From sequence record PP886230.1: a stretch of DNA of 64,000 nucleotides. The stretch is one strand, 5' to 3'. The notes beneath the pieces are model-generated. The model was not told the DNA's origin, searched no databases, and saw only the letters and a program-made list of their open reading frames with translations. Positions within the stretch are counted from its first letter, which is position 1. Every line of letters begins with the position of its first letter. A program made the translations under genes and the position numbers. This document shows, piece by piece, positions 19,369 to 44,386 of this stretch.

Positions 19369-22300
19369 ATGTATATCGATGCTTATATGGAACGTAAACG
19401 TACTGGTGATATTCTTCATGTAGTTGAACGTAAGAATGGTAAACGTATTCTACGCGAATTAGATCCAGTATATGAATATTATGTTGAATCCCCACAAGGA
19501 ACACATAAAACTGTTTATGGTACAATGGCTAAACATTTTGAGTTTCAAACTCAAGCTCAAATGAATAAAAGTGTAGAGCAACACAAAAGTGAAGGTCTAC
19601 GTATTTTTGAAAGTGATTGTAACATTACATTTAAAACATTAGCTAAAGAATATATGGGAAAAGGTTCACCCGATTTGAACATCGTGTTCTTCGATATCGA
19701 GACTGATTTCCATAAGAAATTTGGTTATGCTCCACCATCAGACCCGTTTAACCGAGTAACCGCTATTTCTCTATATCAATCATGGACTGGAAAGGATTAT
19801 GTACTTACTTTACCACCTGCTGATATGGAAATTTATGAAGCACAAGATATTGTTCGCCAACTAAATGAAGAAACAAACGATCCTAACAGTACTGTAATTT
19901 TATATACAGACGAAAAGGAAATGTTTATGGAATTCTTTAGTTTAATTGATGATTCTGATGTTATTTCAGGATGGAATAGTGAATTCTTTGATATTCCATA
20001 TATGATCAATCGAACTAAAAAAATCTTCAATGAAGCAACAACTGCTCGTTGGTGTTTATGGAATAAAAAACCAAATTCACGTGAAGCAGACAACTTTGGT
20101 AAAACTGTTCAAACATATGATCTGGTAGGTCGCGTCCATCTTGATTATTTGGCTTTGTATAAGAAACATGCTGGTCAAGTTGAACAATCTTATAAACTAG
20201 ATTATATTGCTGAAAAAGTAACTAAAGAAAATAAAGTATCCTATGAAGGTTCATTGGATAAACTTTACAGAGAGGATTACATTACTTTCTTGCGTTATTC
20301 TAAACAGGATAGTATTCTTCTTAAAAAGATTGATGCTAAATGTGACTATATCAACCTACACAATCGACTTGCACACAAAGAATGTGTACTTATCAGTACA
20401 ACAATGGGTTCAGTAGCACTAATCGACACTGCTATTATCAACTTAGCACATACTCGTGGTGAAGTTGTTTTCAACAAAGCACCGAAAGATGATCTTGAGT
20501 TTGATCCAGAAATGGAATATTATGGTGAAGATGGTGAAGAAGAAGATGAGAAAATTAGTGCAAAAGCAGCAGGTGCATGGGTACAAGATCCAGTACTAGG
20601 ACTTGTAAGTGACCTTGGGTGTACTGACTTTAACTCTCTTTACCCTACTGTTCTACGTACTTTGGGTATGAGTACTGAATGTATTCTTGGTCAATTACGT
20701 CAAGATTACACCGATGCGTATCTTGCAGCTAAAATCCAAGAACAGAAGAACAAATCTAAATCTAAATCATTTGAACCAGATTGGACTGCGGCATGGCATG
20801 GTTTATTTGCTGCTGTTGAATTTACAATGGTTCATGAAAAGTCAGAAGAAACATTGATTGTTGATTTAGAAGATGGGAGTTCTTTTAAAGCAACGGGCAA
20901 AGAGCTATATGATATTATTTTTGCAGAAGATAGTACTATTGTACTTAGTGCAAACGGAACACTTTTTGATAAGTCTAAGTCTGGTGTAATTCCTGACATT
21001 CTAACTCAATGGTATTCTGAACGTAAAGCACAGCAAAAAATGGTCATTGACTACAAACATATGTATACTGATGGTTGGGAGTTTAATGGCTATGAAAAAG
21101 TCGAACCACTACTATCAAACTATACCCCTGGTACAATGTTTAGAACTAATATTCATGATAATGATCCTGTATACTTACTTCGTAAAGAAATTGGTAAAGG
21201 ACAGTGGGATGAAGTTGCTAAGTTGATTGTAGAAAACGGATTAGTACTAAAAGATGGTCGTATTTTCTGTCCTAAAGAAGAAAAAGATTACTTCAAACAA
21301 CGTAGTGCTTTCTGGAAACAGAACCAACAGATTCGTAAGATTCTTCTAAACAGTCTATATGGTGCACTATTGAACAAAGGTTCTCGTTTTTTTGACAAAC
21401 GTTTAGGTCAATCCGTAACATTAACTGGACGTTCTATGACCAAACATATGGCAAGTCGTATCAATGAAATTACTACTGGTGTATATAACCACCAAGGTGG
21501 TTCAGTAATTTATGGTGATACTGACTCAGTTTACTTTAGTGTAACTCATTATCTGAAAGAACAAGGTATTCCATATAATCTATCTAAAGAAGAGATTGTT
21601 GATATGTATATTAAAATTGGTGAAGAAGTTGGTGAATCTTTCCCATCATTTATGCATGAGATGTTCAACACTGGTATTGAAAAAGGTAAGATTGTTGGTG
21701 CAGACCTTGAGATGGTTGGTTCGCGTGGCCTATTCTTGAAGAAAAAACGTTATGCAATTCTGAAGTACTGGGAAGATGGGTTCCGTAAAGATATTGATGG
21801 TAAACCAGGTGAAATCAAAGCGATGGGTCTTGAAATTAAACGCTCAGACACGCCAAAATACATCCAGAACTTCCTAGAAGAGACTCTAATCGCATTACTG
21901 GTAGGTGAGAGTGAACAACAGCTAAAACAGCGTGTACGTGAGTTTAAGGACGTATTTAAGGATATGCCTGTACATGAAAAAGGTTCACCAAAAACTGTAA
22001 AAAACTACACTAATTTAGAGGCTGAATATCAGCTAACTGGTAAGTGTAAAGTTGGTCACGTTCTTGCTGGTATCCAATGGAACCGTCTACGTGAAGTTTA
22101 TGATGATAAATCTGTTCCAGAAGTAACAGATGGAACAAAAGTAATTGTCTGTAACTTAAAAGATAATCCTATGGGAATTAAAGCAGTTGGTTATCCAATT
22201 GACTGTGTTGAGTATCTTCCAGAATGGTTCTTGGAACTACCATTTGATACTGAAAAAATGGAAGAGATTGTTCTAACTAAAAAATTAGAGAATATTTTTG

Positions 22301-22374
22301 GTATTTTGGATATGGATATTGGTATTCATGAAAAAAGTACTGCGTCAGTAAACAATGGATTCTTCACTTGGTAA
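19369..22374 (+). CDS. gp43: Family B DNA polymerase with 3'-5' exonuclease (gp43)
   Basis: Exo FDIETD, GWNSEFFD, YKLDYIA; pol DFNSLYP, KILLNSLYG, YGDTDS, KKRY. Confidence 0.97.
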   Translation: MYIDAYMERKRTGDILHVVERKNGKRILRELDPVYEYYVESPQGTHKTVYGTMAKHFEFQTQAQMNKSVEQHKSEGLRIFESDCNITFKTLAKEYMGKGSPDLNIVFFDIETDFHKKFGYAPPSDPFNRVTAISLYQSWTGKDYVLTLPPADMEIYEAQDIVRQLNEETNDPNSTVILYTDEKEMFMEFFSLIDDSDVISGWNSEFFDIPYMINRTKKIFNEATTARWCLWNKKPNSREADNFGKTVQTYDLVGRVHLDYLALYKKHAGQVEQSYKLDYIAEKVTKENKVSYEGSLDKLYREDYITFLRYSKQDSILLKKIDAKCDYINLHNRLAHKECVLISTTMGSVALIDTAIINLAHTRGEVVFNKAPKDDLEFDPEMEYYGEDGEEEDEKISAKAAGAWVQDPVLGLVSDLGCTDFNSLYPTVLRTLGMSTECILGQLRQDYTDAYLAAKIQEQKNKSKSKSFEPDWTAAWHGLFAAVEFTMVHEKSEETLIVDLEDGSSFKATGKELYDIIFAEDSTIVLSANGTLFDKSKSGVIPDILTQWYSERKAQQKMVIDYKHMYTDGWEFNGYEKVEPLLSNYTPGTMFRTNIHDNDPVYLLRKEIGKGQWDEVAKLIVENGLVLKDGRIFCPKEEKDYFKQRSAFWKQNQQIRKILLNSLYGALLNKGSRFFDKRLGQSVTLTGRSMTKHMASRINEITTGVYNHQGGSVIYGDTDSVYFSVTHYLKEQGIPYNLSKEEIVDMYIKIGEEVGESFPSFMHEMFNTGIEKGKIVGADLEMVGSRGLFLKKKRYAILKYWEDGFRKDIDGKPGEIKAMGLEIKRSDTPKYIQNFLEETLIALLVGESEQQLKQRVREFKDVFKDMPVHEKGSPKTVKNYTNLEAEYQLTGKCKVGHVLAGIQWNRLREVYDDKSVPEVTDGTKVIVCNLKDNPMGIKAVGYPIDCVEYLPEWFLELPFDTEKMEEIVLTKKLENIFGILDMDIGIHEKSTASVNNGFFTW

Positions 22375-34564: not shown

Positions 34565-35383
34565 ATGACAAAATTAAATGAGTTTTTATCAAATGTAGCA
34601 GTTCTAGATACTGAAACTACTGGGGTTGAGAGTGAAGATGATATTATTGAATTTAGTATCTCGTATCCACATACTTCACATGAAAACATTGATACTATTG
34701 ATAACTATACATTGAGATACAAACCCTTGAAAGATATTCCACCAGAGGCATCTGCTGTGCACTTTATCAGTACTGAGGATGTAGCTAATTGTGTTGGGTA
34801 TAAAGATGATTTAGATAACATTGATGCACTTATGGGATGCCGTAAGTATTTTGTTGGTCATAATGTACAATTTGACCGTAGAATGATGGTAGATAACGAA
34901 TATAAATATCGTAACTCAATTTCACAGTACTTACTTGATGAAAATAAATGGATTTGTACCCTTCGTCTTGCTAAGAAAATGTTCGCAGAAGATATTGAAT
35001 TTAAAAACTTAACTCTAAGTTATTTGTGGTATAAGTTTGGATGTTATCGTGATGTTCATCGACCTGTTAATGCACACGCAGCAAAAGACGATGTGTTCAT
35101 GTGTTATCAGGTTCTAATCAAATTAGTTGAAATTGCAATCGAACGTGGACATATTGAGCCTAATGGTGATATTGGTGAGCAAATTGTAACTTTCTGCAAC
35201 ACACCAATGCGTTATCAATTCATGCCATTTGGTAAACACAAAGGTGAGCCAATGAGTACAGTTCCATTGAATTACATTGAATGGATGATTGCTAATAGTG
35301 ACATTTTAGATGCAAGTAACCCTAACTGTGATAAAGATTTAGTATATACATTTGAGTACGAATATAATACTCGAACTAATTAA
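34565..35383 (+). CDS. DEDDh 3'-5' exonuclease, exonuclease X-like
   Basis: LDTETTG, VGHNVQFD, AHAAKDD, C-terminal MPFGKHKG....VP..YI.W. Confidence 0.88.
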   Translation: MTKLNEFLSNVAVLDTETTGVESEDDIIEFSISYPHTSHENIDTIDNYTLRYKPLKDIPPEASAVHFISTEDVANCVGYKDDLDNIDALMGCRKYFVGHNVQFDRRMMVDNEYKYRNSISQYLLDENKWICTLRLAKKMFAEDIEFKNLTLSYLWYKFGCYRDVHRPVNAHAAKDDVFMCYQVLIKLVEIAIERGHIEPNGDIGEQIVTFCNTPMRYQFMPFGKHKGEPMSTVPLNYIEWMIANSDILDASNPNCDKDLVYTFEYEYNTRTN

Positions 35384-35398
35384 TAAAGGTAATCATGG

Positions 35399-36883
35399 AT
35401 GAAAACTTGTAAGTTAACCTTATTGGATGAGGTGAATTGTAAATTTGAGGGACTTGATCCCTCAATTAGACAAAAGATGATTCGTGCAACTGAATATGTG
35501 TTACCATATGCAAAGTTCACACCAGCAGGACGTATTGGACGTTGGGATGGTAAAGTTCAGTTTATGAATTTAGGCGGGACAACTTATTATCATATGTTAG
35601 ATAAGTTATTGCCTATTCTTGATGAAGCTAAGATTGACATTGAATTAGTAGATCATAGGGTAGATTATGGATTTAAATTTGACCCCATTGATGAAGATAT
35701 TTTTAGTGATGTTGTATTCGGTGCAGGACACCACATGGAAGGTAAATCCATAAAACTACGTGAACATCAAGTTAATGCGGTTAATGCATGTTTGGCTAAT
35801 CCACACGGACTACTATTGGCAGCTACTGGTGCAGGTAAAACTCTCATTACTGCTGCATTGTCAAAGAAAGTGCAAGAGTATGGACGTTCTGTTATAATAG
35901 TACCAAGTACTGACTTAGTACAACAAACATATGATGACTACATTATGTGTGGGTTGGATACTGGCATGTTCTATGGTTCACAAAAAGATTTTGGTCACCA
36001 ACATACTATTACGACTTGGCAATCATTTAACTCTCTATGGAAGAAAACCAAGAAAGGTGAAATTGAATTAACTGAACAAGACGTGAATGATTTTATCGAT
36101 GGAGTAGTTTGTGTTATCGTTGATGAGTGTCAAGGTGCAGGCGGTGACGCATTAGTTCAAGTACTTTCTAAAGTTATGAATAACGTACCATTACGTTGGG
36201 GTCTTACTGGAACAATTCCTAAAGATCCGGTAGTTGCCGCGAAAATCAAATGTAATGTTGGTGATGTTATATTTAAAATAACTGCAAAGGAATTACAAGA
36301 TAAACAAATACTAAGTACATGTAATGTGAATTGCATCAAACTAAAAAGTAGTATGAAGTTTGCATCATATGCTGAAGAGTTGAAATACTTAGTAACTGAC
36401 AGAGATAGGATGGCATATGTAGCGTCATTGATATCTGCGTTATCTGAATCAGGAAACACTTTAGTTTTAGTAGATAGACTTGAAGCAGGTGAGTTGCTAT
36501 GTGAATTTTTAGGCATTCCCAAATCAGAATTCGTTCGTGGAGAAACTAAAAAGAAAGATCGAGAATCATCTTATGGTGAAATTCGTTGGGCTGATAATAA
36601 AATACTTATTGCGACATACGGCGTTGCCAGTACGGGTATTAGTATTTCAAGGTTATATAATGTAGTATTGATTGAGCCAGGAAAAAGTTTTGTAAGAACT
36701 ATACAGTCAATTGGACGTGGATTACGCCGAGCAGAAGATAAAGACCACGTAGAAATATATGATATTAGTGGTTCTAATAAGTATAGTGCCAAGCATTTAC
36801 GAGAACGTTTAGCTTACTATAAGGAAGCACAATATCCTCATAGTATAATAGATGTTAAAGATTGGGAAAACACAGCGGGATAA
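35399..36883 (+). CDS. uvsW: SF2 DNA helicase (UvsW)
   Basis: ATGAGKT, VDECQ, WGLTGT, ATYGVASTGISI, QSIGRGLR. Confidence 0.93.
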   Translation: MKTCKLTLLDEVNCKFEGLDPSIRQKMIRATEYVLPYAKFTPAGRIGRWDGKVQFMNLGGTTYYHMLDKLLPILDEAKIDIELVDHRVDYGFKFDPIDEDIFSDVVFGAGHHMEGKSIKLREHQVNAVNACLANPHGLLLAATGAGKTLITAALSKKVQEYGRSVIIVPSTDLVQQTYDDYIMCGLDTGMFYGSQKDFGHQHTITTWQSFNSLWKKTKKGEIELTEQDVNDFIDGVVCVIVDECQGAGGDALVQVLSKVMNNVPLRWGLTGTIPKDPVVAAKIKCNVGDVIFKITAKELQDKQILSTCNVNCIKLKSSMKFASYAEELKYLVTDRDRMAYVASLISALSESGNTLVLVDRLEAGELLCEFLGIPKSEFVRGETKKKDRESSYGEIRWADNKILIATYGVASTGISISRLYNVVLIEPGKSFVRTIQSIGRGLRRAEDKDHVEIYDISGSNKYSAKHLRERLAYYKEAQYPHSIIDVKDWENTAG

Positions 36884-37376: not shown

Positions 37377-37874
37377 ATGAACGTATTAACACCTGAAAAT
37401 AATTCTTTTGACATGGATTTAGTAACAGAACATATCCCTGAAGAAATGTATTGTGTTTTGGATCTAAGCCCAAATGGTGAATCTGATTTTTATTTTAGAC
37501 ATATTCTAAACACCGTATCATTTAATAGTATTAGTGCTGATCTTCAAATTGGTGAAAAGATTATTCAAGTGCCTCTAGGATGGCAAATTATGTTAGGTGA
37601 TGAAGAAACTGGTATGGTTGAGATGTGTACAATTGAAAACATTCTTAACATGAAAGAACCAAAAGCTTTTGTTTACAATCCTATCCGTTCAATGTATCCT
37701 AAGTTTGAACCAGTCAAAGTACTACGTGTATTTGCATTAACTACAAAGTGGCAGATACCAATGTTACCTAAAAAGAATTTACTATGCGTCCCACTACATA
37801 GTGGTGAAAATCCACCATGTGTGTACTTTGCAGATGAAAACGAAAAAATTCAAGATTTGTATCTAGGAGTATAA
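37377..37874 (+). CDS. Hypothetical protein
   Basis: 165 aa, AAGGAG RBS. Confidence 0.75.
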   Translation: MNVLTPENNSFDMDLVTEHIPEEMYCVLDLSPNGESDFYFRHILNTVSFNSISADLQIGEKIIQVPLGWQIMLGDEETGMVEMCTIENILNMKEPKAFVYNPIRSMYPKFEPVKVLRVFALTTKWQIPMLPKKNLLCVPLHSGENPPCVYFADENEKIQDLYLGV

Positions 37875-37878
37875 AATA

Positions 37879-38724
37879 GTGTTTGATTTCAGTGATATTA
37901 AAAATAAGTCGGTCGATGATGATGAAAAACCAACACAGCATTCTTTTTCTATTGCTGAATTTCTAAAACACATTGACCGTGCTGATTATAAGTACTATAA
38001 TGACATGACCGAAAAAGAACGAAAAGAGTTTACTCCATATACTGTTTTGCGATGGGTAAGCTCTTTAGATGATTCGTTACAAGTAACCTACCCTAGTAGT
38101 AAAGTTGAAAGTGTATTTGGAAAATGGAAATCTGGTGGTAAAGAAGCACTGACTGAACTAGTTACTGAATTAAAGTCTTCAGGGACAAATGTTTCATCAG
38201 TAACTAAGTACTGTCATAGTGATTATGATTGGCGTATTAAATTTGCAGTCCAATCAAAAGATGACGCACAAAAATTAATATCCTCAATGGTCGAATTTGG
38301 CGTATCAGGTTCCGAAATTGTTTCATTAGTAGATACTGAAGTTGTCAAATACCAACTTATTATGCTAAATGATATGGTTAATGATGGATTTTGGGATATG
38401 AAAGAACATCCAGAATTAGTATATCAGCTTATGTGTTCAGTCCATGATATGATTGGTGGACAAGAAATGCCACGTAACTGGTTAAACTTTTCTAAGAATT
38501 TCAAAAAGGCAAATAACGAATTATTTGAGTTAATTAAAAGCTCACAACCTGATACTATATCTACTCAAATGAATGAAGATGAGTACAAAATTGTTCTATT
38601 GCAGTATGATAAAAAAACATTTGAGACATTTCTTGACAATAATGGTTTTCAAGATAATGAAAAGAAATCTATGATGAAATTGTTTAAAGAAGAATGTAAA
38701 AAATATGGCAAAGAAATCAAGTAA
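37879..38724 (+). CDS. Hypothetical protein (replication cluster)
   Basis: 281 aa, GTG start after AGGAG. Confidence 0.7.
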   Translation: MFDFSDIKNKSVDDDEKPTQHSFSIAEFLKHIDRADYKYYNDMTEKERKEFTPYTVLRWVSSLDDSLQVTYPSSKVESVFGKWKSGGKEALTELVTELKSSGTNVSSVTKYCHSDYDWRIKFAVQSKDDAQKLISSMVEFGVSGSEIVSLVDTEVVKYQLIMLNDMVNDGFWDMKEHPELVYQLMCSVHDMIGGQEMPRNWLNFSKNFKKANNELFELIKSSQPDTISTQMNEDEYKIVLLQYDKKTFETFLDNNGFQDNEKKSMMKLFKEECKKYGKEIK

Positions 38725-39415
38725 TCAAGTATATACCTGTAGATTTTGTGATCGTGAATTTAAACGTGAAGAAACTGTAAACACACATAAATGTATAAAA
38801 CGTGACCGATACGAAGACCGCCAAAGCCGCCAGATGATGGAGGCTTTTCGTATATATATGCAATTTATGGAATTGAATAAGTTCCCATTTAAAAAAGGCG
38901 TAGAGCCTTTTATTGCTTTTATAAAGTCAAAGTACTTTAATGATTTTTATAGTTTTGCCGAATACTATTTGAATAATAGAGATATTATTAATGTGGACGA
39001 GTTTGTAAAGTACTTGATTATCAATAACAAACCAATCACGGAATGGAGTACATATAAAGCAAAAGATGAATGGATATTAAAAACAATTCGTGCCGAGCAC
39101 CCAAAAGAAGCAATTGCAAGAAGTGTTATCTCACTGGTTGAATGGGCTGAAAATTTGAATGTACAATGGAATACTTTCTTTGAAAATGTAAGTTCTGCCC
39201 GTGCAATTGCATGGATTGAGAGTGGTAAAATTTCACCTTGGATTATCTGGCTTGCTCCTAAAAAAAGTACTAATAAGTTTTTTAAAAAACTATCAAACTC
39301 AGAAATTGAATATATACTTAAATACATCGATCCAAGTTATTTTGAAATCAAAACTATAAAATACAAAAAGGATTGTGATGAAATTAAGATTATGCTATGT
39401 GAGGCAGGATTATGA
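38705..39415 (+). CDS. Hypothetical protein with N-terminal zinc finger
   Basis: CRFCDREFKREETVNTHKC (C2HC). Confidence 0.7.
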   Translation: MAKKSSNQVYTCRFCDREFKREETVNTHKCIKRDRYEDRQSRQMMEAFRIYMQFMELNKFPFKKGVEPFIAFIKSKYFNDFYSFAEYYLNNRDIINVDEFVKYLIINNKPITEWSTYKAKDEWILKTIRAEHPKEAIARSVISLVEWAENLNVQWNTFFENVSSARAIAWIESGKISPWIIWLAPKKSTNKFFKKLSNSEIEYILKYIDPSYFEIKTIKYKKDCDEIKIMLCEAGL

Positions 39416-39741
39416 ATGGAAAAAGTATATATAATAAAATACCAGAAGGGTATGTACCTGTACCTAAAGAACAAAAATCAAAACAAATATCTCTACTTAG
39501 ACAAGGATCTATTACTGAAATAACTTTAGATGGTAAAACATTTCAAGTTCATGATCCTGCTCGTATTGAAAAAATTATTTCTTTGGTAGAAAGACACGAA
39601 GAACGCTTTTTCAGTTTAAGTCAAGAATTGGCAAAGACAAAACAAAATTGTAGATTATTAGAGAATCAAATATCAACTTTGACTAATACAGTTAAACAGT
39701 TACAGGAGCAAATAAAAAATGCAGGATTCGACCGATTCTAA
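39412..39741 (+). CDS. Hypothetical coiled-coil protein
   Basis: 109 aa, heptad-rich C-terminus. Confidence 0.65.
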   Translation: MNGKSIYNKIPEGYVPVPKEQKSKQISLLRQGSITEITLDGKTFQVHDPARIEKIISLVERHEERFFSLSQELAKTKQNCRLLENQISTLTNTVKQLQEQIKNAGFDRF

Positions 39742-40357
39742 ACATTATAGAAAAGCCCGAACTGATATTGACATTGACTTCAAGGATAGTAAAAGCGTAA
39801 TCGCTAAACTTCCATGTGTGCGAAGTACTGAAAAAATTACGGAGGATGGTTTAATCCCCCATAATAGTGGTGTTCATTTTGATAATATACCTATTGACCC
39901 AATCACTGGATTGGCAAGTATACAATATAAAGAAGCTGAAAGGTTAGGGTATCAAAAAGTTGATATTCTTTCACAGTCAGCTTACATGTATGTTCGTGAT
40001 AGAGAGCATTTAAAAGAACTAATGAATCAGGAACCAAATTGGGATCTATTGTTAGAACCCGAAATTGTAGAACATCTATCGCAAATTAAAAAACATGTAA
40101 CTTTATTAAATGTATGGAAGCCTAAATCTATAGACGAACTAGCAATGTTTATTGCAATGATTCGCCCAGGAAAAAGGCAGTGCCAAAGTATGAACACATG
40201 GGACGAAGTTAAAGCTACCATATGGGATTATAGTACTATAGGAACTGACCAAGCAGGAAATAAATTACGATATTTCAAAAAGCCACATGCTTACGCATAT
40301 AGCTTAATGATTGTTGTACAACTAAATGCTTTAGTTGAACATCTTACTTCTTCTTAA
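39719..40357 (+). CDS. Minimal DnaE (Pol III alpha, family C)-like catalytic core
   Basis: TDIDIDF, HNSGV, GYQKVDILS, PKSIDELAMFIAMIRPG, YFKKPHAYAY parallel the DnaE motifs in order. Confidence 0.8.
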   Translation: MQDSTDSKHYRKARTDIDIDFKDSKSVIAKLPCVRSTEKITEDGLIPHNSGVHFDNIPIDPITGLASIQYKEAERLGYQKVDILSQSAYMYVRDREHLKELMNQEPNWDLLLEPEIVEHLSQIKKHVTLLNVWKPKSIDELAMFIAMIRPGKRQCQSMNTWDEVKATIWDYSTIGTDQAGNKLRYFKKPHAYAYSLMIVVQLNALVEHLTSS

Positions 40358-40697
40358 GAGCCACATTACGACGCTTGATGCGTTTCTGTGGCAAATTGCT
40401 TAAAGAAACTACTGGACCACATACGAAATTCACCGACGGTGTATCGAATCTCTGTGTGTACGGTTCAAATTTCTCCATCTCTTCTTGAAAGAATAGACAA
40501 ACTGGAATGGTTCTATTACTTTGCCACCACCAATCGTGTGCTATACCTAACAATTCGTCTTGCATTGAATCATCCATATCATCGAAACAGTAAAGAGTTG
40601 TATACTGTTTGCTTTTGATTTTGATGATACCAACAAACGTTTTACCATCATACTGGATTACAGTAATGAATGGTGGAATAGTGTTATATTGATTCAT
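40344..40697 (-). CDS. Hypothetical protein
   Basis: 117 aa; PFITVI.Y....VGII, WWWQSNRTIP..F. Confidence 0.7.
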   Translation of the reverse strand: MNQYNTIPPFITVIQYDGKTFVGIIKIKSKQYTTLYCFDDMDDSMQDELLGIAHDWWWQSNRTIPVCLFFQEEMEKFEPYTQRFDTPSVNFVCGPVVSLSNLPQKRIKRRNVALKKK

Positions 40698-41787: not shown

Positions 41788-42843
41788 ATGAACGCTGTAC
41801 AAAACATAATGGCACAAATTATGAATGATCCAGTACCTGCGATTGGTACATGGTCACAACACAACTGTCCAGCTTGTGTGTTCAGAGGACATTCAAGGCC
41901 GGATACAAAGCACCGTGGTAATCATATGTTCAATGCAGATGGTTCCGTTTCATATAACTGCTTTAACTGTAGTTTAAAAACTGGTTGGCAACCAGGAAAA
42001 TATATGAGCAAAGATATGGAGTCTTTGCTCATTTCTTTTGGTGCACAAGATAAAGAAATAGAATTAGTTAAGTTTTATATTAAAGAAATGGTTGACAGCG
42101 GTGATTTTGATGCACAAGAAACTGTTGCATCAAAATTGTATGACCGAGTAACAGTACGTGATTTGCCATCAAATGCAAAAACATTTTGGGAATGGGCTTC
42201 TTTACCTGAAGATAAAATTCCACAAGAATTTATAAGTGTTTTGCATAATGTCAATGAAAGAAACCCATATCTGTTAGACTTAGAATTATATTGGTCACCT
42301 AATAAAGAACATAAAATGTATGACAGATTTATTATTCCATATTTCATGAATGGTAAAATTATTGGTTATACTGCACGACATAAATTAAAAGATCCTGGAA
42401 GTACATACAGGTTCATAAATCAAGTAAGTACTAATATACTATATAACTATGATTTATTAAAAGATGAACGAATAAAAACAATTTTAGTATGTGAGGGTCC
42501 GTTAGACGCAGCATTAATGGGTGGTGTATCTGCTAATAACTTTAAATTATCAAACGTACAGATTGATGTATTAAAAGATGCACAGCAAAAAGGTAAAAAA
42601 ATAGTTATTGTTCCAGATAGAGATAAAGATGGATTAATAACTATAGACCAAGCACTTGAAAATGGATTCAGTGTTTCCTTCCCAGACTTTGGTGCTGTAA
42701 GAGAAGGTAGTACAATACGTCATATCAAAGACTTTGAAGAAGCTTGTGCACGATTTGGTAGGTTATTTTGTTTACAATTAATACATGATAGTATAGTAGA
42801 TGAGCCATTTTATATTAAAGCTCAAACGGATAAATGGATGTAA
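41788..42843 (+). CDS. gp61: DnaG-type DNA primase (gp61-like)
   Basis: Zn finger CPAC..CFNC, RFIIPY..G.IIGYTAR, TOPRIM CEGPLDA and PDRD. Confidence 0.85.
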   Translation: MNAVQNIMAQIMNDPVPAIGTWSQHNCPACVFRGHSRPDTKHRGNHMFNADGSVSYNCFNCSLKTGWQPGKYMSKDMESLLISFGAQDKEIELVKFYIKEMVDSGDFDAQETVASKLYDRVTVRDLPSNAKTFWEWASLPEDKIPQEFISVLHNVNERNPYLLDLELYWSPNKEHKMYDRFIIPYFMNGKIIGYTARHKLKDPGSTYRFINQVSTNILYNYDLLKDERIKTILVCEGPLDAALMGGVSANNFKLSNVQIDVLKDAQQKGKKIVIVPDRDKDGLITIDQALENGFSVSFPDFGAVREGSTIRHIKDFEEACARFGRLFCLQLIHDSIVDEPFYIKAQTDKWM

Positions 42844-42865: not shown

Positions 42866-44386
42866 ATGATTCAAAGCACAGTGGATGTGAAACAATATGG
42901 GATTAATGCACAACAATACTTATTATCTCAGATTTTCAGTAATCCTGATTTATATGTACGTTGTAAAAATATCCTTAAACCAGAATATTTTGATAAAACA
43001 TTTCATGAAAGTATTCAATACGTGCATGATTATGCTGCAAAATATAGTTCATCACCTACTTTGAAAGATATTGAAGTTAAAGGTGGTTATCAATACGATC
43101 AATATGAAGTTCAAGAATTACATAAACAATCAGTACTTGATACCTGTGGTGAATTTTGTCGCCATAAAGCATTAGCTTTAGCCGTTGAAAAAGGAATGGA
43201 ACTTGTCCATCAGAAAAAATATGGTGGAATCGAAGAACTAATCCGAGAAGCAATGTTGGTAACGGTACAGAATGAGTTAGGTTTGGATATTTTTGAAAAC
43301 CCTGAAGATACAATCCGCTCACTCAGTACAATGCAAGGATCATTTAAGAGTGGTTGGGAAACTCTTGATTACAAACTTTTCGGTGGATTTGGGCGTAGAG
43401 AGTTAGAGATCTTTGCTGCTGCATCAGGTGGTGGTAAATCAGTAGTACTGCAAAATTTAGCAGTTAACTTTGCGAAAGCTGGAATGAATGGTGCATACAT
43501 TTCACTTGAACTAGCTGAAGAGTTGGTTGCTGTTCGTATCTATGGTATGATGACTGAATCAAAACTCAGTAACGTAAAAAATGAAGCTGAAAAGATTGGA
43601 TTTGCTGTTAAAGTTGAAGGTAAAAACAGTGGTATGTTGCGTATTAAACGCTTACCTGAATCTGTAACAACCACAGACGATATTGAAAGTTATCTACGTG
43701 AATTACAAATTAAGATGGAAATCAAACTTGATTATGTATGCGTGGACTATTTGGATCTATTAACTTCTAATCGTCTTGGACCAAATGATAAATCCAATAC
43801 ATTTACTAAAGATAAATTTGTATCAGAAGAATTACGTGCTCTTGCATCCAAAATGGATTTGACTGTTTTCACTGCATCTCAGTTTAACCGTAGTGGTATG
43901 GACGAAGATAAGAAAAGTCAAAGTCAGATTGCTGGTGGTATTTCAAAAATTTATACTGCTGATAACGTAATTTATATTGAAGCAAAAAAAGAAACTGGCG
44001 AACTATGGTTTGATTTCCAAAAAACACGTAACAGTAGTGCAGTAGGTTCCCGTTTGCGTATGTCATATGATATTGATTCATTGAGAGTTCTTGACCACGC
44101 AACTACAGTACAACAAATGGAAACCGAAGGTAATGGATTCCGTCACAGCGGGGTTTCTAAGATTGGTGGAGGGAACATGGCGTTACCACCCAGCACTATG
44201 CAAACATTACGTCATTCGCTTTCTGGTGCAGCTAAATCACCATCTGTGCAACCTGACAATACAGTAACACTAAATACTGATAGTGCTCCTAACTCTACGA
44301 CACAAAACGAAATACAGAATCCACAGACACATGCTGGTACTGATCGTGTTCATGCAATGAAGCAATGGTTAAATCAAAGGAAATGA
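42866..44386 (+). CDS. gp41: DnaB-like replicative helicase (gp41)
   Basis: AASGGGKS, ISLELAE, VDYLDL, SEELRALA, TASQFNR, KTRNS. Confidence 0.93.
   Translation: MIQSTVDVKQYGINAQQYLLSQIFSNPDLYVRCKNILKPEYFDKTFHESIQYVHDYAAKYSSSPTLKDIEVKGGYQYDQYEVQELHKQSVLDTCGEFCRHKALALAVEKGMELVHQKKYGGIEELIREAMLVTVQNELGLDIFENPEDTIRSLSTMQGSFKSGWETLDYKLFGGFGRRELEIFAAASGGGKSVVLQNLAVNFAKAGMNGAYISLELAEELVAVRIYGMMTESKLSNVKNEAEKIGFAVKVEGKNSGMLRIKRLPESVTTTDDIESYLRELQIKMEIKLDYVCVDYLDLLTSNRLGPNDKSNTFTKDKFVSEELRALASKMDLTVFTASQFNRSGMDEDKKSQSQIAGGISKIYTADNVIYIEAKKETGELWFDFQKTRNSSAVGSRLRMSYDIDSLRVLDHATTVQQMETEGNGFRHSGVSKIGGGNMALPPSTMQTLRHSLSGAAKSPSVQPDNTVTLNTDSAPNSTTQNEIQNPQTHAGTDRVHAMKQWLNQRK

Follow-up and report, generated by a model that had tools for sequence, protein, structure and literature searches.

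Genetic organization of the region

The window, by which we mean the whole stretch of 64,000 nucleotides that was analysed, belongs to a jumbo phage. Between positions 36000 and 44000 its sequence is the same as that of Escherichia phage vB_EcoM_E9.1 (100% identity; subtracting 186000 from a position in that record gives the position in the window), and it is 99.8-99.9% identical in this part to other jumbo phages of the 121Q/PBECO4 type (Asteriusvirus, Rak2-like), which have genomes of approximately 350 kb. Two genomes were used as stand-ins, the 121Q-like record G001 and the annotated genome of vB_EcoM_E9.1 (PP886230.1). The genes of the window that bear on this analysis are the following.

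19369-22374, plus strand: family B DNA polymerase, 1001 amino acids (PF03104, E 3.8e-23; PF00136, E 1.1e-21)
34565-35383, plus strand: DnaQ/ExoX-type exonuclease, named 'Pol III epsilon' in relatives (PF00929 RNase_T, E 6.7e-15)
35399-36883, plus strand: SF2 (UvsW-like) helicase, start of the conserved block (ResIII/DEAD/Helicase_C)
37377-37874, 37879-38724 and 38705-39415, plus strand: three ORFs without assigned function, whose order is retained in PA5oct and Atu_ph07 according to blastp
39719-40357, plus strand: putative C-terminal half of a split minimal Pol III alpha, with the metal-binding palm strands and shortened fingers
40344-40697, minus strand: convergent ORF of 117 amino acids, overlapping the 3' end of the preceding gene by 14 nt (phrog_11637, unknown function)
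41788-42843, plus strand: DNA primase (phrog_47, E 3.5e-31; same order in PA5oct and Atu_ph07)
42866-44386, plus strand: DnaB-like replicative helicase (PF03796 DnaB_C, E 3.4e-17)

The ORF at 39719-40357, which extends from an ATG to a stop codon and encodes 212 amino acids, is part of a conserved block of genes. The block consists, in this order, of the SF2 helicase gene, the ORFs that start at 37377, 37879 and 38705, the 212-amino acid ORF, the convergent 117-amino acid ORF, a gene for a 'virion structural protein', and the primase and DnaB-like helicase genes. This order is common to the Rak2-like phages, PA5oct and Atu_ph07, with protein identities of 22-47%; the SF2 helicase homologues of PA5oct and Atu_ph07 are 46-47% identical and occupy the same position. 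The primase gene starts 1431 nt beyond the 212-amino acid ORF, in agreement with the distance of about 1.4 kb given in an earlier, first-pass annotation of this DNA.

A Pfam search returned zero matches for the neighbouring ORFs located between 36939 and 39741, and their only PHROG assignments are to families without polymerase function. The 236-amino acid product of 38705-39415 includes a zinc-finger-like motif (C-x2-C...H-x-C) near its N terminus. The plus-strand ORF at 39412-39741 encodes a coiled-coil-like protein of 109 amino acids that belongs to phrog_14909 ('virion structural protein') and overlaps the start of the 212-amino acid ORF by 23 nt; it alone, of all members of the block, gave no blastp match at E<=0.01 with the set of PA5oct and Atu_ph07 neighbour ORFs used for comparison. 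The convergent 117-amino acid ORF accompanies the 212-amino acid ORF in every lineage examined, including PA5oct and Atu_ph07, where it is found at the same position, and a homologue is also present beside fused forms of the gene that are described below (metagenomic contigs L017 and L007). Its product can be considered a candidate accessory factor.

As the first-pass annotation indicated, the window also includes a full family B polymerase, whose gene is shared with G001. This enzyme carries its own 3'-5' exonuclease domain and is the candidate for the main replicase. The exonuclease match covers residues 80-280 and the polymerase match residues 645-865; the approximately 360 residues in between are not covered by any Pfam family.

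Sequence features and conservation of the 212-amino acid protein

The amino acid sequence encoded at 39719-40357 includes a series of motifs in the order in which they are found in DnaE: T15-DIDID-F21, H48-NSGV52, G77-YQKVDILS85, P135-KSIDEL141, I145-AMIRPG151 and Y185-FKKPHAYAY194. The ORF and all the motifs listed in the first-pass annotation were therefore found in place. The codons of the residues most important for what follows are located as indicated here.

39764-39778, plus strand: codons of D16-I-D18-I-D20; the first two aspartates, D16 and D18, are equivalent to D401 and D403 of E. coli
39962-39964, plus strand: codon of D82, which lies in the strand GYQKVDIL and is the third catalytic carboxylate; aligned to M. 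tuberculosis DnaE1 'GllKmDFLG'
40163-40174, plus strand: codons of R149-P150-G151-K152, the fingers 'RPG' motif, aligned to 'ALYRPG'
40277-40300, plus strand: codons of K187-K-P-H190-A-Y-A-Y194, the fingers 'FNKSHA.AY' motif, aligned to DnaE1 'FNKSHAAGY'

D82 presumably occupies the position of E. coli D555, the assignment of the latter being that of Lamers et al. 2006. Among 62 relatives, with identities down to 40%, residues D16, D18, D20, H48, G51, D82, R149, P150, K152, H190 and Y194 are invariant, and the conservation of F186, K187 and K188 is 90% or higher. The invariance of D16, D18 and D82 bears out the proposal that the three catalytic aspartates have been retained.

Database searches with the protein gave a sub-threshold Pfam match to DNA_pol3_finger (PF17657) at residues 129-162 (E 0.045), no match in NCBIfam, and an assignment to phrog_11778, 'DNA polymerase' (E 2e-108). 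When the family profile was used to search the sequences of the PDB, the match was to DnaE only, in the form of M. tuberculosis DnaE1, and it was weak (E 0.21). It consists of four collinear pieces, PDIDIDF, GllKmDFLG, ALYRPG and FNKSHAAGY, the first of which is aligned to the D16-D20 stretch. A phmmer search of the PDB with the single 212-amino acid sequence produced a chance match to dynein only. As the matches obtained from sequence alone are weak, the homology to DnaE rests on the structure prediction together with the collinear motifs.

Comparison of the gene with those of six relatives gave dN/dS ratios of 0.03-0.12 (Nei-Gojobori); for the least saturated pair dN was 0.033 and dS 0.91, a ratio of 0.037. 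The gene is under strong purifying selection. Parts of it are covered by short contigs from a wastewater metatranscriptome, with 0-4 mismatches, in libraries that may contain DNA. Scans for sigma-70 promoters and terminators gave signals at background level only.

Predicted structure and comparison with full-length DnaE

The AlphaFold2 model of the 212-amino acid protein had a mean pLDDT of 93.6. Pol III alpha accounted for all of the top 13 Foldseek matches, and the 12 best chains obtained with VIA-align were all C-family polymerases. The alignments covered residues 456-841 of Taq Pol III alpha (Z 9.8, rmsd 4.1 Å, 200 residues), 414-811 of M. tuberculosis DnaE1 (Z 9.6), 394-784 of E. coli alpha (Z 8.5) and 965-1304 of the PolC chain 9qrl_A (Z 6.2), while the best unrelated chain reached a Z of 4.1. 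Bacterial Pol III alpha is the best and the only consistent structural match of this protein. The invariant residues, the collinear profile match and the restriction of the structural matches to the C family uphold the DnaE homology that had been proposed from the motifs.

The phage protein is considerably more compact than its bacterial counterparts. In the alignments to the Taq, M. tuberculosis and E. coli enzymes, 188-200 residues of the model cover chain ranges of 385-398 residues, and about 205 phage residues span a stretch that takes 391 in E. coli alpha. The thumb is absent, D20 and H48 being separated by only 27 residues, and the fingers are shortened to about half the DnaE length. The C-terminal end of the protein corresponds to residue 784 of E. 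coli alpha, and the clamp-binding/OB region thus lies beyond its span. The near-identical genome G001 gave no match to the PHP domain (PF02811) at any position, whereas this domain was matched in each of 14 control genomes, and the HhH/clamp region (PF14579, HHH_6) had no match in G001 either. The loss of the PHP, thumb, clamp-binding and OB regions noted in the first-pass annotation is therefore confirmed.

What the 212-amino acid protein shares with a C-family core is the set of palm strands with the three carboxylates and the RPG and KxH..Y motifs of the fingers. A GS loop on the same chain, an N-terminal PHP domain, a thumb, and the HhH/clamp-binding and OB region are not present. Because the palm subdomain that includes the NTP-binding GS loop (GxGRGS) is missing from the ORF, the latter is not a complete minimal core. 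The term 'minimal polymerase core' used previously is thus appropriate in that the protein is DnaE-like and reduced, but not in that it implies completeness, since the half of the palm with the GS motif is encoded elsewhere.

A distant gene encodes the N-terminal half

A search of genome G001 with the Pfam DNA_pol3_alpha family revealed a second small ORF located approximately 31 kb downstream of the first (L005 1204-1746). In vB_EcoM_E9.1 it corresponds to the CDS 256694-257212, flanked by the topoisomerase II genes on one side and by a clamp-loader gene on the other, which on the scale of the window is at about 70.7 kb, i.e. outside the window. The encoded protein, hereafter the N half, has 180 amino acids in G001 and 172 when counted from the start codon that most relatives use, and it matches positions 16-95 of PF07733 (E 3e-10 in the genome search, 2e-9 with the protein). 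The N half ends with the GS loop of DnaE, in which all of 65 relatives have GxGRGSSVxSY unchanged; after the loop comes the helix whose E. coli sequence is ..FERFL.

The AlphaFold2 model of the N half had a pLDDT of 86. Its residues 78-172 align to residues 278-394 of E. coli alpha (Z 10.0, rmsd 2.8 Å, 94 residues), and alignments were also obtained to M. tuberculosis DnaE1 307-414, Taq 296-456 and PolC 823-965. The end of the N half coincides in each case with the start of the 212-amino acid protein, the C half, namely at residue 394 of E. coli, 414 of M. tuberculosis, 456 of Taq and 965 of PolC. According to these models, the two halves tile one continuous DnaE stretch, equivalent to E. coli residues 278-784. 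Residues 1-77 of the N half (L005 1228-1458) are predicted to form a small strand-plus-helix domain (pLDDT ~68-93) that lies outside the DnaE palm and is covered by none of the PDB matches listed.

These results modify two of the earlier suggestions. The 212-amino acid protein comprises the metal-binding strands and the reduced fingers only, with the GS loop being in the 172-amino acid protein, so the description 'stand-alone nucleotidyltransferase' is not supported. On the other hand, since the GS-loop subdomain is a separate protein, the idea that the C half is completed in trans is probably correct, but by a distant gene about 31 kb away and not by the adjacent ORFs, which have neither a Pfam match nor a polymerase PHROG.

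The N half terminates at once behind the 'EFLK' helix, and in the C half DxDxD is preceded by only about 15 residues. An intein-type split was considered and rejected, as the conserved ends leave no intervening sequence that could house intein halves. In the absence of such room, the N and C halves must act as separate subunits and not as a spliced chain.

Distribution of the two halves and natural fusions

According to tblastn, 96 phage records carry the C half and 94-95 the N half. The two lists show identical organism names and near-identical counts; a difference of one Klebsiella record may be explained by a partial record of 85 kb that includes the C half. Rak2-like phages of Escherichia, Klebsiella, Salmonella, Erwinia, Yersinia, Serratia, Pectobacterium and Cronobacter carry both halves, as do PA5oct-like phages of Pseudomonas, Xanthomonas, Stenotrophomonas and Vibrio phages, and Agrobacterium phage Atu_ph07. 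In every record for which both positions were compared the halves are separate, at distances of 14-182 kb (~31 kb here, ~44 kb in PA5oct, ~14 kb in Xoo-sp13 and 182 kb in Atu_ph07).

The DnaQ/ExoX-type exonuclease gene is located 4.3 kb upstream of the C half, and its PA5oct homologue is at about 8 kb from the N half; the C-terminal stretch of the protein matches QSregVF_b/ExoX-like_C. The distribution of this exonuclease does not single it out as a dedicated partner: it was found in 125 phage records that include small phages without the mini-polymerase, and its position relative to the halves varies.

An exhaustive profile search with the C half against 1.84 billion representatives (clusters at 50% identity) gave 565 matches at E<=1e-3. 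Nearly all of the best 150 of these 565 are stand-alone proteins of 190-215 amino acids, or fragments. Natural fusions of the two halves were also recovered, two among the best 150 matches and two from a follow-up search: P0302 (375 amino acids), P0390 and P0391 (376 amino acids), and P0379 (336 amino acids). The fusions were drawn from five independent metagenomic samples. In these proteins the N half corresponds to residues 10-180 and the C half to residues 180-375, with a linker of about 10 residues, and the PF07733 match crosses the N/C junction. P0302 can be aligned to E. coli alpha (E 3.5e-6), with the first two aspartates of the motif on D401 and D403; by way of this fused relative, the DxDxD of the C half is aligned to 'DFDVDF' of E. 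coli, in a stretch whose end is numbered to residue 417.

When a maximum-likelihood tree was built from the C-half region, P0302, P0390 and P0391 formed a clade inside the split forms, with supports of 96/95 and 100/100. As they are nested in this manner, their fusion is secondary. P0379 has a very long branch in the same tree. This divergent, unsplit mini Pol III alpha has DYDIE in place of DIDID, and its gene lies directly downstream of a 552-amino acid gene whose stop it overlaps, on an 8-kb JGI metagenome contig (L008 1516-4181). The 552-amino acid protein includes a PF03090 Replicase domain and an HTH; we take PF03090 to be an AEP-type plasmid priming protein. The two genes may form a small module for the replication of some other mobile element, and their proximity is a second, independent link to a priming enzyme.

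A probable two-subunit C-family polymerase

We conclude, with a probability that we would place at about 0.85, that the 212-amino acid protein is one subunit, the C-terminal one, of a much reduced C-family polymerase made of two pieces and typical of the Rak2-like and related 'group 2.2' jumbo phages, a reading that takes in both the pairing of the two proteins and the synthesis of DNA. The C subunit would provide the shortened fingers and the beta-sheet on which D16, D18 and D82, the three metal-binding carboxylates, are located, and the N subunit (172 amino acids) would contribute the helical subdomain that bears the nucleotide-binding GRGSS loop. The two proteins are expected to associate as a heterodimer and so to rebuild one Pol-beta-like nucleotidyltransferase palm, in which the GS loop of the N chain would hold the triphosphate and D16, D18 and D82 of the C chain would hold the two metals. 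The reduced fingers, with RPG and KxH..Y, may position the nucleotide and the template, both of which are contacted by their counterparts in DnaE, and the reconstituted pair would catalyse templated DNA synthesis. The lack of the thumb, clamp-binding region, OB fold and PHP domain leads us to expect a mini-polymerase that is poorly processive and distributive; with the thumb and about half of the fingers lost, the primer-template may no longer be held as it is in DnaE.

The job of such an enzyme is most likely, to judge from gene order, short-patch synthesis beside the family B replicase, for example primer extension or gap filling. This role is suggested because the C half has a conserved place beside the primase and helicase genes and because one fused form is linked to a replicase; the location of P0379 beside an AEP-type replicase hints at the same coupling to a primase in another mobile element. 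The more specific proposal of an active polymerase that is coupled to the primase, takes over RNA primers or fills gaps, and then hands over to the family B replicase is put forward tentatively, and we would not expect it to hold in all its parts.

The halves might assemble and make something other than templated DNA, such as untemplated tails, a short primer or a nucleotide signal, or they might be a non-catalytic scaffold in the replisome. Members of the Pol-beta-fold superfamily have changed substrate many times, and a pair of proteins that has dispensed with thumb, clamp-binding, OB and PHP parts and has fingers of about half the DnaE length could be another such case. However, the invariant residues are not limited to the metal ligands but include those of the fingers (RPG, KxH..Y) that in DnaE contact the dNTP and the template, the C-half gene is found within a replication block, and one of the fused forms follows a replicase/primase-type gene. 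We therefore regard a change of product or the loss of catalysis as unlikely.

That the 212-amino acid protein would be self-sufficient, or would be completed by the products of the adjacent ORFs between 36939 and 39741, seems more improbable still. The presence of all three carboxylates and of the fingers motifs on this one chain speaks in its favour, and three of the upstream ORFs do keep their order in PA5oct and Atu_ph07. Against it, the protein lacks the GS-loop subdomain, which DnaE requires to bind nucleotides and which is encoded here by a distant gene whose product tiles exactly with the C half, the N and C halves are fused in natural relatives, and the neighbours lack any Pfam match, to DnaE or otherwise. 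Finally, the possibility of a decaying, functionless remnant of a captured dnaE, to which the size of one sixth of DnaE and the word 'truncated' applied to the partner in some phage papers might point, deserves practically no credence and is already refuted as far as sequence evidence goes, given dN/dS ratios far from 1, invariant active-site residues, a gene order conserved across genera and a length of ~190-215 amino acids that is uniform in hundreds of clusters (best 150 of 565 matches).

Relationship to previously described polymerases

The system is already known from comparative genomics. Iyer, Anantharaman, Krishnan, Burroughs and Aravind (2021, Viruses 13:63; PMC7824862), in the passages of their article that concern it, described a split minimal Pol III alpha in 'group 2.2' jumbo phages as a phage-specific module with an NTP-binding N piece and a Mg2+- and template-binding C piece. 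The same passages indicate that the two genes are distant and that a family B polymerase is present too, and they propose a role in the synthesis of one strand or in repair. Compared with that account, ours is the very same system, and the gene in the window is its C-terminal piece with no difference in kind: a separate C piece of ~200 amino acids, a distant N gene in the same genome, and PolB without other Pol III domains were all found here. The view that the protein is unexplained is accordingly not correct if it is meant as unnoticed. What the present analysis adds to those passages of Iyer et al. is modest and consists of the structure-based break point, the natural fusions, the dN/dS ratios and the gene order around the primase and helicase.

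The N half had attracted attention before, in phage papers that mention a 'truncated' Pol III alpha (CBB_328; Atu_ph07 gp316), and in many GenBank records either half or both already bear the name 'DNA polymerase' or 'Pol III alpha', as the first-pass annotation had guessed. A literature search found no experimental paper on the split mini Pol III alpha. In the text of the PA5oct omics paper that was searched there is no gene-specific statement, and the family is not covered by a survey of bacterial polymerases from 2026.

With the bacterial DnaE/Pol III alpha enzymes (E. coli 2HNH, Taq 3E0D, M. tuberculosis DnaE1 5LEW) the phage system shares the Pol-beta-like palm, the DxD plus third aspartate, and the RPG and KSH motifs of the fingers. 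It differs from them in that the palm is divided between two polypeptides and in that it has no PHP, thumb, HhH/clamp-binding or OB/tau-binding parts. Cyanobacterial DnaE is also encoded by two distant genes and is split by a trans-splicing intein; the phage polymerase resembles it in being a C-family enzyme from two distant genes, but the phage halves leave no space for intein halves. Bacillus subtilis DnaE (DnaE3) is a second, less processive C-family polymerase that acts beside PolC and extends primers. Given the linkage of the phage gene to primase, this enzyme is a possible functional analogue. B. subtilis DnaE is, however, full-length and clamp-binding, whereas the phage enzyme is not full-length and the main replicase of the phage belongs to family B.

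If the pair is active, it would be the smallest known C-family DNA polymerase, with approximately 385 residues in two chains versus approximately 1160, and it would define the minimum that the C-family fold requires to copy DNA. It would also provide a compact model of how the bacterial replicase may have grown from a core. For the phages themselves, the replisome would be a hybrid in which polymerases of the bacterial type (family C) and of the archaeo-eukaryotic type (family B) are combined.
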